Source: Salpingoeca rosetta (lineage: Eukaryota > Protista > Choanoflagellata). From it: 64,000 nt of DNA. Both the position numbers and the translations under genes were made by a program. The notes beneath the pieces were generated by a model that worked only from the letters and a program-made list of their open reading frames with translations, ran no database searches and was not told the origin of the DNA. Positions 537-57,500 of this stretch are shown piece after piece (positions within the stretch are counted from its first letter, which is position 1; each line of letters opens with the position of its first letter). Where the stretch lies: contig JAWQFM010000009.1 in assembly GCA_033442325.1 (NCBI GenBank), positions 1,281,672-1,345,671 on the forward strand. Reading direction: 5' to 3'.

Positions 537-1387
537 ATGCGACTGCTCGGGATTGACACGGCGTCCTGGTACATGGTCAGTGTGTGTGTGTGTGTGTGTG
601 TGTGTGTGTGTGTGTGTGTGTGTGTGTGTGTGTGTGTGTGTGTGTGTGTGTGTGTACACAACAAACATAGTGTCGAAGACGCGCTTTCTATCCCTCCCCT
701 TACTCCGCACAGACACGATCACTCACTTTCATTGCACACACACACACACATATCAGGACTATGAGGGCCAGAAGTTGATGGAGGGCTTGTTCCAGTACAT
801 TATTCTTGGGTTCATGACACTTGGGTTTGGTTGGGGATACTACTGCCAGCGATTTGAACAAACCATCTACGTCACCCTCGGCGGCGTGGCCCTCGCGTTT
901 CTCGTGAGTCCGCTGTGTGTGTCTGTCTGTCTCTCTCTGTCTCTCTCTGTCTCTGTCTCTGTCTCTGTCTCTGTCTCTCTCTGTCTCTGTCTCTGTCTCT
1001 GTCTCTCTCTGACACACACTCTCTGTCTCTCTGTTTCCTTCTGTATGTGTCTGTGTGTGTGTGTCTAAGTTTCCTTATCTTCCCACCATTGCCGTGTCTC
1101 CCCGCCTTCTTCCCCCTCCCACCTTTACCCTGTCTCTCCCCCCGTACCCCTGTGGCTCGTGTCGACCTGTAGCAGCCATGTCGTGCTGTTGCGGCTGCGA
1201 ATGGTTTCTGTTCATCTGCTTCTCACGAGCACCTGGCCCCTTCTCACGTCCACAACCCCCTTCCCATGATTCTCTCGCTTTATCATTTCTACAGATCTGC
1301 CTGCCACCCTGGCCCATGTATCGACGACACCCAATCAAGTGGTTGAAGCGACACCCAAAGCAGAAATCAGCACCAGAGACTAGTTGA
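537..1387 (+). CDS. SPCS1: Signal peptidase complex subunit 1 (SPC12), 3 exons (~537-575, 757-903, 1295-1387)
   Basis: Spliced product MRLLGIDTASWYM|DYEGQKLMEGLFQYIILGFMTLGFGWGYYCQRF...ALAFL|ICLPPWPMYRRHPIKW matches the MDYxGQKL...PPWPxYRRHPxKW signature. Introns are GT-AG. Confidence 0.93.
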
Positions 1388-1642
1388 AATCGCTCGCGTA
1401 TGTGCGTACCTGTGTGCGCATGTATGCATGATTTGATGTGCTCGTTGTAGATTGACCAACCTCGTATCTTCCTCGCCTGATCCTTTTGCGGTACTTTCCT
1501 TGCGCCCCTGGCGACAAAGCCATGTTATAACAATTTTTCTCTGCCAACAAAAGCTGCAAGTACGCATCTGTCCGCCCGTCTGTCTGTCTGTGTGAACGAA
1601 TGACTGTTGCCCAGTACCCTGCCGGGTTGCTTGTTCCTTTTG

Positions 1643-1770
1643 CGTCGTCGTCGTCGTCGTCGTCGTCGTCGTTGTTGTTGTTGTTGTTGCTGTCGTCGTC
1701 GTCGTCGTCGTCGTCGTTGTTGTTGTTGTTGTTGTTGTTGTTGTTGTTGTTGTTGTTGTTGTTGTTGCTG
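1643..1770. repeat. Compound (GTC)n/(GTT)n trinucleotide microsatellite between the convergent 3' ends of SPCS1 and CEP104
   Basis: Directly visible. Confidence 0.95.
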
Positions 1771-53691: not shown

Positions 53692-54580
53692 CGTGGGAGC
53701 TGCTTGCTGGCTTGTTTTTGTTTTTGTTGGCTTGCAGAAAATCGTGTCAAGATATAGCAAACACGTTCTTCCACACCCACGTGGCGATTTTTCTTTCATG
53801 CCCCTTCTTTCGCGTCTTGTGCTTCTTCGCTCGCCTCGCGTCCCTTGCCTTCTTGTTCGCGACTTTTTTCATGTGGTTGGTTGTGGGTGTCGAGCCAAAC
53901 AAACACTCCGCCTTCTTCGTATCTGTTCGCTTGCTTGGGTCTTGTGTCTTCCAAGCAAGCAAGCAAGCCATCGCACCGTTCTTGCGTGTGCTTCCTTTGC
54001 CTTGTTTCCTCCCTCCCTCCCTCCCTCTCTCTCTCTCTCTCTCTTTGTGCTGCTTGCTGAAGTGGCAGCGCCTTCCGACCACCAGGTTGCTGTCTTTGTG
54101 TGTGGAAGTCAGAATCACACCGCACACACACAAGACACACGACACACGATTGTAACGTCACACAACATCATCGCGGTCGGTCACTTACGGTGCACCACAA
54201 GCAAGCAATCCCGGCTCTTTTATTTGGTTGGTTTTGCGGGGTTGCACCATCGCACAAGGGCGGCAGCAACACTTGCTTTTGGCGGCTGACTTTTGGCTTT
54301 TGTTCTGGTTTGAGCCGCCGACCTACCTCAGTCACAACCACGTCCACGAAAAGCCACCTTCCGCGGGTGTGGTGCTACCTCTGACGTGAAGCATCGTTTC
54401 TTACCTCCACCCGTCTCAAGTGGAGCCACAACTCAAGGCACCCCAAGCCTTATTGACACACCCGTGTGTTCCCGATCCGCTTCTAGTTCCCACCTTGTTT
54501 CTGAGTGGTACACCACGCTCTTCTCAACGCGTGTTTGTTTTGAGGGGCCCCCTCAGCGAACTTGACTCAGCACCATCATC

Positions 54581-57500
54581 ATGAGCTCCGAGAGCGCCAA
54601 CAGTAAGTCCATGTGCACACACTTTGCGTGTGCTTGATGGTTGCGTGCGTCATGCGTGTGCGTGATGGTTGTGTGTGCGTGCCTCTGTATGCATCGCGTG
54701 TGCATCCGTATTTGCATGCCCTAGTGTGCTTGTCACCCCTGCATCGCGTGCGCTCACGCAGATGGCATTCAACTCGATTCCGTTGTCTGATTGTGGCGCA
54801 CCCATACAGGCTCTCGGACGACGTTCGGCGACGTGTGGTTTATTGGTAGCGCACACGTCAGCCATCACAGGCGCAGCGAAGATGTTGTCGGAGCCATGCG
54901 CGGCCTGACTCAGCTCAACTCTCCACAGTACGTTCCATGCCGTTCTTGCTGCTGCCATATTGCCATCATGTGGTGTCTGTGCGTGCGTGTGTGCGTTTGT
55001 GTGGTGCGTTGTGGGGCATGTGTGTGTATGTGCTGCGTTGTGCCACGTGTGTGTGTGTGTTCTCATGTTGTTGTGTCGAGCCAATGAACGTGGTGATGAA
55101 AAGCACTCGTATCATCCTGAGCTCACGTGTGGTTGGCGTTGCTCCAACCCGCAACAGATACGTCGCTGACGCAGACGCCGTCCAAGTGACCTTTGCCATC
55201 ACTCCTACACATGTCAAGTGCTTCACAACGAACAACAAGGTATGTTGCCGCTTGGTTTGTTTTCCCGCCAGCCTGCCGTGGTCGTCGTCTACATGGAATG
55301 TACACATGTGAAGGTTGGCGTGTGTGTCGATGTGTCGACTTGAATCCTTCTATCACCACTCAAGCCACATTTCACTTGCTGTGCTTTATTTAGGAGGAGC
55401 GCCTGTCTTCGCCGCTCCAACAAATATCCTACTCCTGCTGCGGTCCCGTGACAACAGAATTGAGGTGCGTTCACACCTCAAGTAGCAGCTGTGCTCTTTC
55501 GTTATCATATGGTGTTTGTGTTTTTGTGTTTGTGTGGTGTATGTGTTTGTGGTGTTTGTGTGTGTGTGTGTGTGGTGTTTGTGTGTGTGTGTGTGTTTCA
55601 GATTCGTCGATTGCATGGATCGTGGCCACGCATGATACACTCACTTTCACGCTCACACACGCTCACACGCTCCCTCACACACACACACACACACACACAC
55701 ACACCCTCACACTCACACCCTCACACTCACATACTGCAGGCAGTACTTTGCGTACGTATGTACCAACTTCATCGGGGATATGCCGCTTGGGTTTATCTGC
55801 CACGTGTTTCGGGCGCAAGACAAGGAGGCCGCCGAAGCGGTGGTGACAGCCCTGGGCGAGGTGTTCCGCGCAGCGCGGGAAGGCAGCAGCACGGACACCA
55901 CCAGCGTGAGCGGGCGCTCCCTGCAGAGCGGTGACTCTGTGATATCGCAGACAAGCGAATCGCTGGCGTCGCGATCATCGCGGCTCAGCGGGCCCGCATC
56001 CGCCTCCATGGGCAGCGCACACGACAGCTGCGTCACCCAGTCCCCACCTGAGGAGAGCAAGAGCCTCATGTCGGCCGCTTCCGGCTCCAAGTCACTCGGT
56101 GGCGACACGGCCACACCACACAGCCACCTGGCACAGCCGCGACTGCAACAATTACAGCACCAGCAGCAGCAGCACCACCACCACCACCACCAACAACAAC
56201 AACAACAAAATGACCATACACACCGCCACCACGAGTCGCAGGCGCAGCACAAGCGACAGCGTCACCTCCATGGGCCGTCTCAGTCGCCTGCGCAGGTGCA
56301 ACGGCTCCGTGGCAAGGGCCACCGGCGCACGCGCAGCGAAGGCGCCAATTGGACCATCACCAGGACATCGAGTGCCGCCAACGTGACCGCTTCGGGACAG
56401 CCGACATCGCTGCAGGTGCTGGAGCAGCGCGCCGCGCGTATCCACGCCCGCCTCCGCGCCCTGTCCATGCTCAAGGAGCACAAGGACGAGGAGGGCCAGA
56501 AGCACGCGCGGTCCTTCACGGGCGACGCCATTGTTACGTGGCTCGTCTCCCAGAAGGAGGTGGAAACGCGCGCCGAGGCGGTCCAGTTTATGCAGACGCT
56601 TTTGAGCAACGGCGTGATTGATGCCGTGGGCGCCAACCCGCTGACCCAGTTTCGCGACGGCAACCGCCTCTATGCGTTTGCTGTCGACGTGAAGCGCGCG
56701 AACCGGCGACGCCGCCAGCAGCAGCTGCAGGAGCTTGGCCTGTCCTCGAGCGGGCGCGGTGGCGCTGGCGGACGACAGCGCACGCGCGTTGCATCGTGGC
56801 ACGCGGCCGAGCTCTCTGGCAGCATCGAGTCGCTCGTGGAGCGCAACCGCAACGAGAACATGCCCTCGGACGAGCTCAGCCTGCACGTGGACACGAAGAA
56901 CCCGCTGCTGAACAAGGCGCTTGTGAGCATCCGCACCAATGACGGTGACGCCCTGGCAGAGGTGCTGCCCGAGATTGAGAAGAGCGCATCTGTGGAAGCA
57001 GAGGACGACGACGGCGCCGCAACTGGCGCAGCAACCCCTGTTGAGGCAGATGGCTCTGCCTCTACCACGTCGACGACGACGCCCACGCCCACGCCCATGC
57101 CCACGCCCACGCACGGCGATGACCGTCCAAGTGCCGATGCTGGTGGCGGGGACCGCCCGATTTCCATCCCGCGCGAGCAAGTGCTGTCGCAGCTGCTTTA
57201 TTTATCCCTGTCGGCAGAGGCGAGCCAGTGCACGGAGCACTTGCTGCATGTGCGATGCGTGGATGTGAACGCGCCACTGAACCAGGAGGGCGACACGGCC
57301 CTGCACCGTGCCGCCGCCTGCAACAACAAGGCGGTGGTGATGCAGCTGCTGGACAACGGCGCGGACGTCAACGCCACGAACGACAGCGGATGCACGCCGC
57401 TCTTCTTTGCCGCGCAAAAGGCAGAGAACCACGAGTGCAGCATCTTGCTGGTGGAGAACGGCGCCTGCGTGCGAGCGGTCAACGCAGACGGCAAGCGCCC

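Follow-up and report, generated by a model that had tools for sequence, protein, structure and literature searches.

Do simple repeats around the coding exons of a choanoflagellate follow a rule of orientation, and what could impose it? The question is raised by a 64-kb stretch of the Salpingoeca rosetta genome (C9:1281672-1345671, in a 55.4-Mb assembly of 68 contigs), referred to below as the window. A sequence-only reading of this stretch had described GT-type microsatellites after splice donors and stop codons, and CA-type microsatellites before acceptors and start codons. The orientation sorting is confirmed here as real: GU-type repeats lie just after coding exons and CA-type repeats just before them. 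As for its cause, the sequence data leave us evenly divided on the explanation that we consider best, namely that an RNA-level, single-strand-specific constraint, acting as a filter or as a signal, sorts the tracts around coding exons.

Polarity at the edges of non-coding gaps

Since an upstream CA tract is the reverse complement of a downstream GT tract, the rule reads identically on the plus strand for either gene orientation. Every non-coding gap should therefore open G+T-rich and close A+C-rich, a prediction that can be tested from a coding/non-coding segmentation alone. The segmentation was produced by a strand-symmetric 7-state coding hidden Markov model (HMM) trained in this analysis, which started from five Pfam-supported open reading frames (ORFs) as seeds and was then refined iteratively on the window together with 200 kb of contig C1, a total sample of 264 kb or 0.5% of the genome. 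For each non-coding gap, the G+T fraction of the last 100 nt was subtracted from that of the first 100 nt.

This difference was positive in 53 of the 60 window gaps and negative in 7 (sign test p=8e-10). The independent 200 kb of contig C1 gave 142 positive and 29 negative gaps out of 171 (p=4e-19). The effect was similar in all classes of gap, whether same-strand plus, same-strand minus, convergent (stop-stop) or divergent (start-start), in agreement with the earlier claim that the polarity flips with the gene strand.

A census of every tract 20 nt or longer and no more than 150 nt from a coding edge led to the same result, with 69 of 85 conforming in the window (81%; Fisher p=7e-9) and, in contig C1, 155 of 202 (77%). 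Tracts lying more than 150 nt from coding edges were not consistently sorted in orientation. All 20 tracts cited by the sequence-only reading are present at their coordinates with the plus-strand composition described, each adjoining a coding segment of the implied strand. The skew analysis that it had called for, run over the 264 kb around predicted splice sites, starts and stops, revealed both positional and strand bias. Its interpretation holds in part, the signal being anchored at exon edges; the proposed bridging of introns by GU/AC pairing is not supported.

The material on which the sorting operates is abundant. Tandem Repeats Finder returned 430 rows for the window, which contains 56 perfect (GT) runs of at least 6 units and 42 such (AC) runs, and perfect GT/AC-type tracts of at least 12 units occur at about 0.5 per kb.

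Donor and acceptor sides of introns

Each same-strand gap was assigned a single frame-compatible GT..AG pair as its intron, on the basis of short splice-site matrices blind to the tracts (n=163). A full gene finder covering introns, starts and stops merged adjacent genes and produced tiny exons, and was kept only as a cross-check for some ATGs. Among the predicted introns, SPCS1 intron 1 (577-756) is the only one with homology support, as exon 2 matches Pfam SPC12 right from its first residue; the intron at 9654-9907 was read by eye. The intron-related features of the window are the following:

538..576, plus strand: SPCS1 exon 1, with its ATG at 538 and ending in TACATG; read from the sequence
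577..756, plus strand: SPCS1 intron 1, consisting of GTCAGT, a GT run, a mixed stretch, (CA)8 and TATCAG; one of the minority class with both tract types
580..655, plus strand: (GT)38, beginning 4 nt past the donor GT
735..750, plus strand: (CA)8, ending 6 nt ahead of the acceptor AG
757..903, plus strand: SPCS1 exon 2 (Pfam SPC12, E=3.7e-14; positions 2-50 matched from the first residue)
904..1064, plus strand: beginning of SPCS1 intron 2, where an A-poor (TGTC/TCTC)n array comes after GTGAGT
9654..9907, plus strand: second intron of the window with both tract types (donor GTGAGC, GT 9658-9690, CA 9829-9877, acceptor TTCAG)
15216..15372, plus strand: (CA)n, ending 5 nt before the coding segment at 15377; predicted acceptor at 15373
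18614..18835, plus strand: (GT)n array, starting at the predicted donor CAG/GTGTGT (18616; the slash marks the exon end)
29378..29421, plus strand: (GT)18, at the predicted donor 29385
30224..30390, plus strand: GT-rich arrays past the predicted donor 30217; the end of this intron is C/A-rich, ...CCACACAG
55672..55712, plus strand: (CA)n, about 50-60 nt upstream of the coding segment at 55764; probably acceptor-side

Over the 163 predicted introns, positions +7 to +80 have a G+T content of 0.62-0.68 with A at 0.13-0.18, and positions -80 to -7 a G+T content of 0.41-0.46, C making up 0.33-0.37 and G 0.17-0.23. On the sense strand, the first 60 nt contain (GT) runs of at least 4 units in 61 introns and (AC) runs of that length in 6, while the last 60 nt contain such (AC) runs in 37 introns and such (GT) runs in 13. 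The acceptor side is thus the weaker half of the polarity. Near the donor, (GT) runs of at least 3 units are found in about half of the introns. The skewed zones span about 100-150 nt from the predicted splice sites, and the middle of long introns is neutral.

The polarity extends to repeat units other than GT and AC, as had been claimed: A-free units number 42 near donors and 10 near acceptors, and G-free units 2 near donors and 28 near acceptors. The related idea that CA tracts stand in for the pyrimidine tract survives in part. The acceptor side is indeed C-rich and G-poor, but it is not T-free, the last 80 nt of the predicted introns comprising C 0.33-0.37, T 0.24-0.25, A 0.20-0.23 and G 0.17-0.23.

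Predicted donors in the window and contig C1 follow the self-trained consensus AG/GTG[C/T]GT (the slash marking the junction), and 25 of 112 of them have GTGTGT itself. A modified U1 RNA matching GUGUGU donors was considered and rejected: both U1 genes have the canonical 5' end AUACUUACCUG, including the following one:

L022:1501-1664: U1 gene, canonical 5' end AUACUUACCUG

Stops and starts

Convergent gaps were tried as after-stop flanks and abandoned because of contamination, only 9 of 52 segment ends lying at a stop, and a stricter set of stops was used in their place. Downstream of 17 high-confidence stops, the sequence is G+T-rich in 16 cases, with a G+T content of 0.59-0.70 over 200 nt that then falls to 0.53. 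Upstream of 11 candidate first ATGs it is A+C-rich in 10 cases, with G+T at 0.32-0.40 over 200 nt and 0.51 beyond; one of these candidates, the start at 55780, probably belongs to an internal exon. The decay of the skew, at about 200 nt beyond stops and about 100 nt ahead of starts, fits the extent of transcribed untranslated regions (UTRs). No AATAAA or ATTAAA was found within 500 nt after the stop for 15 of the 17 high-confidence stops (window and contig C1), and the polyadenylation signal is probably not the animal hexamer. Tracts that follow stops, or that precede starts or coding segments, are listed here:

323..381, minus strand: (GACA/CA)-type tract on the sense strand, 8 nt upstream of the minus-strand coding segment 2-314
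10757..10841, plus strand: GT-rich array, beginning 4 nt past the in-frame stop 10751-10753
11349..11503, plus strand: (CA)76, 41 nt upstream of the next plus-strand coding segment (11542)
20567..20591, plus strand: GT tract, 17 nt past the high-confidence stop 20547-20549
22980..23091, minus strand: (AC)~55 on the sense strand, abutting the first ATG (22981) of a GT4 glycosyltransferase ORF (Pfam)
27536..27607, plus strand: CA-rich tract, 63 nt upstream of the coding segment at 27669
36062..36350, minus strand: CA/GACA-type arrays on the sense strand, upstream of the ATG (36005) of an ASMT-like methyltransferase (Pfam)
44051..44292, minus strand: CA-type arrays on the sense strand, beginning 8 nt upstream of the ATG at 44043
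47899..47978, plus strand: (CA)n, 129 nt upstream of the ATG at 48106

The window has a G+C content of 57%, in a compact eukaryote genome, and none of it resembles human DNA. Its genes include those for a CEP104 TOG-domain protein, a G-patch protein, a DEP/ankyrin protein, the ASMT-like methyltransferase and the GT4 glycosyltransferase. For the 482-aa glycosyltransferase ORF, no encoding record was found in a search that may omit records of the window's own genome. Other repeats were observed in the same stretch. The 3.6 kb at 6242-9906 have no coding call and are packed with repeats, including a 14-nt minisatellite (6602-6709) and an array with a 97-nt period (7385-7566). A (CAT)63 array at 13793-13983 ends just ahead of the first ATG (13985) of a plus-strand ORF, and the HMM call of this array as minus-strand coding is probably wrong. 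The 1165-aa ORF at 15411-18908 carries an in-frame (CAA)25 at 17675-17750; it contained no Pfam family, and a large protein homology search returned no match.

A proposed constraint on single-stranded RNA

A constraint acting on the transcript could produce this arrangement in the following way. Slippage-prone GT/AC-type microsatellites saturate the genome and would constitute a hyper-mutable pool of repeats. Tracts reading as GU in the RNA (or, more broadly, G/U-rich and A-poor) would be retained in the ~100-150 nt that follow an exon, that is, in the 5' part of the intron or the 3' UTR-like flank. Those reading as CA (or, more broadly, C/A-rich and G-poor) would be retained in the ~100-150 nt that precede an exon, in the 3' part of the intron or the 5' UTR-like flank. 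Tracts in the wrong orientation would be removed: a GU run ahead of a 3' splice site or a start codon could act as a decoy donor, a silencer or a source of upstream AUGs, and an A-containing run after a donor could be mistaken for a branch point or an acceptor. Tracts that survive would probably also be binding platforms that sharpen exon edges, recognized by U1 or a TDP-43-like protein on GU runs and by PTB/hnRNP-L-like proteins or U2AF on C/A-rich RNA. They would work as single strands and not as GU·AC helices spanning the intron. That selection does the sorting, and which proteins might read the tracts, are both inferences.

Several points weigh against this proposal. A GU run placed after a donor amounts to a series of decoy donors, and the idea of a filter explains this poorly. 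Rule-breaking tracts number 16 in the window census and represent about 20% of tracts overall. The earlier reading had named two exceptions (37765-37885 and 43209-43380); the first is a true one, and the second is neutral according to the coding model:

37766..37877, minus strand: (GT)n on the sense strand, directly upstream of the exon 37479-37762; true exception
43208..43348, minus strand: (GT)n on the sense strand, 457 nt downstream of the exon 43838-44046, in a 1.5-kb gap and far from both edges; neutral

The possibility that GU tracts compensate for weak donors was rejected, the correlation between downstream GU content and U1 complementarity being small and not significant (rho=+0.13). 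In addition, the donor-side tracts could be passengers, as the masked background predicts a similar excess of GT. Finally, just 0.5% of the genome was sampled, and the introns, starts and stops are predictions of this analysis and not transcript-verified.

Possible passenger repeats on a biased background

The alternative that survives best, a possible explanation that we consider clearly less probable than the RNA-level constraint, is that the repeats are passengers. A modest strand-specific base bias beside exons would be amplified wherever slippage extends local proto-repeats, and the resulting tracts would have no role and be under no selection. The bias could be of an ordinary kind, with a G/U-rich and A-poor donor side, a C-rich and G-poor acceptor side, A/C-rich unstructured leaders and GU-rich 3' ends. 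Masking of low-complexity sequence, which covered 21.6% of the total, leaves a weak polarity of 0.045-0.076 as against 0.20-0.27 in unmasked sequence. On the donor side, GT seeds should be 3.3- to 5-fold in excess given the masked background (A 0.19), and the observed excess is 3.2- to 10.8-fold. The great heterogeneity of tract lengths and units and the absence of a link between tract content and U1 complementarity also suit repeats devoid of function.

The acceptor side, however, behaves differently. Its masked background has a G+T content of 0.50 with no AC preference, slightly favouring GT seeds (ratio 1.3), and yet AC-type tracts outnumber GT-type tracts 1.8- to 6.8-fold. This failure of the local background to predict the CA excess points to an orientation filter or signal at the RNA level. 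Simple independent seeding would not be expected, either, to yield the below-chance co-occurrence of the two tract types within introns that is described below.

Mutational strand asymmetry as an unlikely cause

It is improbable that the polarity is merely a mutational by-product of transcription (strand asymmetry) or of replication, without selection. Transcription-associated asymmetry in mammals, as Green and colleagues are said to have described it in 2003, takes the form of a sense-strand G+T excess, and the excess seen here in the 5' parts of introns and in 3' flanks has this direction. Nevertheless, such a process requires a skew of the same sign over the whole transcribed region, and the sign here switches inside each intron, long introns are neutral midway and 5' flanks are skewed in reverse.

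Coding sequence argues in the same sense. The G+T content of third codon positions is 0.501 overall, which makes a transcript-wide mutational skew unlikely. Over the last ~120 nt before predicted donors (window and contig C1), C rises from 0.40 to 0.53 at these positions and G falls from 0.35 to 0.23, opposite to the adjoining intron; just after acceptors, third positions are slightly G-rich. Donor and acceptor junctions alike thus show a jump of GC skew from negative to positive. Since the trend at third positions opposes the adjacent intron, each junction forms a sharp compositional step, and the skew along a gene is a sawtooth anchored at exon-intron junctions.

Pairing between intron ends as an unlikely cause

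The sequence-only reading had suggested that GU and AC tracts pair to bridge the ends of an intron. Extended to helices like those of teleost (AC)m-(GT)n introns, which would replace the pyrimidine tract and U2AF2, this is a very remote prospect as a general account. Single introns could be bridged: in the predicted fold of SPCS1 intron 1, about 20 bp link both ends (minimum free energy -76.4 kcal/mol, z=-3.55), with a centroid structure that is essentially unpaired, and the intron at 9654-9907 also has both tract types. Moreover, 5' and 3' intron ends pair well whichever introns they come from, at about -36 kcal/mol, compared with -30 kcal/mol when the 3' ends are shuffled.

The population of 163 predicted introns, on which the co-occurrence analysis proposed earlier was carried out, nonetheless behaves in the opposite way to that expected from bridging. 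Introns that combine a GT tract beside the donor with an AC tract beside the acceptor are rarer than under independence (odds ratio (OR) 0.35, 95% confidence interval 0.17-0.73; OR 0.22 in the high-confidence subset), and stratification by length gives 13 introns with both tract types against 20 expected (p=0.012). The duplex formed by the 5' and 3' ends of the same intron (-36.0 kcal/mol) is no more stable than that formed with 3' ends swapped from other introns (-37.9 kcal/mol), and 5' G+T and 3' A+C contents are uncorrelated (rho=-0.10). The polarity is also present after stops and before starts, where no intron exists to be bridged; the order of the repeats is opposite to that of fish; and a candidate U2AF65-like gene is present in the genome. 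Looping of exons was considered separately and rejected, CA before and GT after the same exon being independent (OR 0.85).

The least credible alternative is an artefact of tract selection or of the gene models, for although the sequence-only reading listed about 20 of more than 120 tracts, the gene models are unverified and the coding HMM could absorb AC-type tracts as coding, the full census conforms at 81% and 77% in window and contig C1, the sign tests use a strand-symmetric model and need no strand or splice-site calls, absorption of AC tracts would act oppositely on plus and minus genes, which show the same effect, and the independent contig agrees.

Candidate reader proteins

The sequence-only reading had also suggested that UG- and CA-binding proteins read the tracts as an exon-definition code, which is possible. 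Genes for candidates of three kinds (TDP-43_N, hnRNP-L/PTB-like and U2AF65-like) appear to be encoded in the genome; that they read these tracts is conjectural. The TDP-43_N domain was matched at G000:C10:1830616-1830789 with 69.6 bits, over the cut-off. The match contains one in-frame TAG, which probably lies in an intron, and RRMs were not found in the ORFs scanned. Matches to the hnRNP-L/PTB family are exon-wise and collinear, each of them under the full-length cut-off, and exons resembling the U2AF large subunit (U2AF65) are located at C14:1399573-1401735.

A far-reaching version of the proposal can be formulated, and we regard it as doubtful. The repeat-borne compositional step, C/A-rich before and G/U-rich after every exon and with synonymous sites tuned to it, would be the main exon mark, recognized by TDP-43-like and PTB/hnRNP-L-like readers. 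Microsatellites would thereby be the principal cis-elements of exons and UTRs, the co-occurrence of GU and CA would be avoided to prevent helices, and the system would represent a pre-metazoan ancestor of the vertebrate UG/CA regulators.

Comparison with known systems

A search of the literature on choanoflagellate intron repeats found nothing relevant, and no paper on such a polarity in choanoflagellates within the library searched. In animals, avoidance of decoy GT/AG at exon ends and a strand-asymmetric composition of intron ends have reportedly been described, by Eskesen and colleagues in 2004 and Louie and colleagues in 2003. The choanoflagellate pattern is similar in that synonymous G falls towards the donor and introns start G/T-rich and end C-rich. 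It differs in that the bias resides mainly in expanded microsatellites and is much larger, with a G+T content of 0.62-0.68 at intron starts versus 0.41-0.46 at intron ends.

The vertebrate UG/TDP-43 and CA/hnRNP L elements and pUG folds offer a second comparison. Human introns show an enrichment of GU repeats of 12 or more units close to splice sites, where UG repeats and TDP-43 are documented (bioRxiv 10.1101/2021.12.21.472683; PMC13558559). UG or CA repeats close to predicted splice sites are likewise found here. The 163 predicted introns contain 32 sense-strand (GU) tracts of at least 12 units, of which 21 lie in the 5' half, so that a subset has the length associated with the pUG fold (~12 uninterrupted GU). 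In vertebrates these repeats are read as single strands or as the pUG fold and are scattered regulators of particular exons, whereas the pattern described here is a general orientation rule for which binding is a candidate property only.

A further parallel is provided by the (AC)m-(GT)n introns of teleosts and the lamprey, in which AC repeats come after the 5' splice site and GT repeats ahead of the 3' splice site, and the two co-occur above chance (Lin et al. 2016, Genome Res, PMC4691745). Both systems have complementary repeats at opposite intron ends, genome-wide abundance and single introns able to bridge their ends. In S. rosetta, unlike in zebrafish and other teleosts, GT comes after the donor and CA before the acceptor, co-occurrence is below chance, the structure formed by an intron's own ends is not extra-stable, and the polarity reaches stops, starts and other repeat units.

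Even if it is no more than a filter on hyper-mutable repeats, the sorting gauges how strongly each position of a transcript tolerates runs of GU and of CA, and the polarity would still be usable by gene finders in this clade as a signal of strand and boundary. Should the sorting prove functional, exons and UTRs would have a simple model of how they are defined, based on the orientation of repeats and not on degenerate motifs, in a sister lineage of animals that is genetically tractable. This model would also stand in direct contrast with fish, where the same two repeats occur in the opposite order and act through base pairing.

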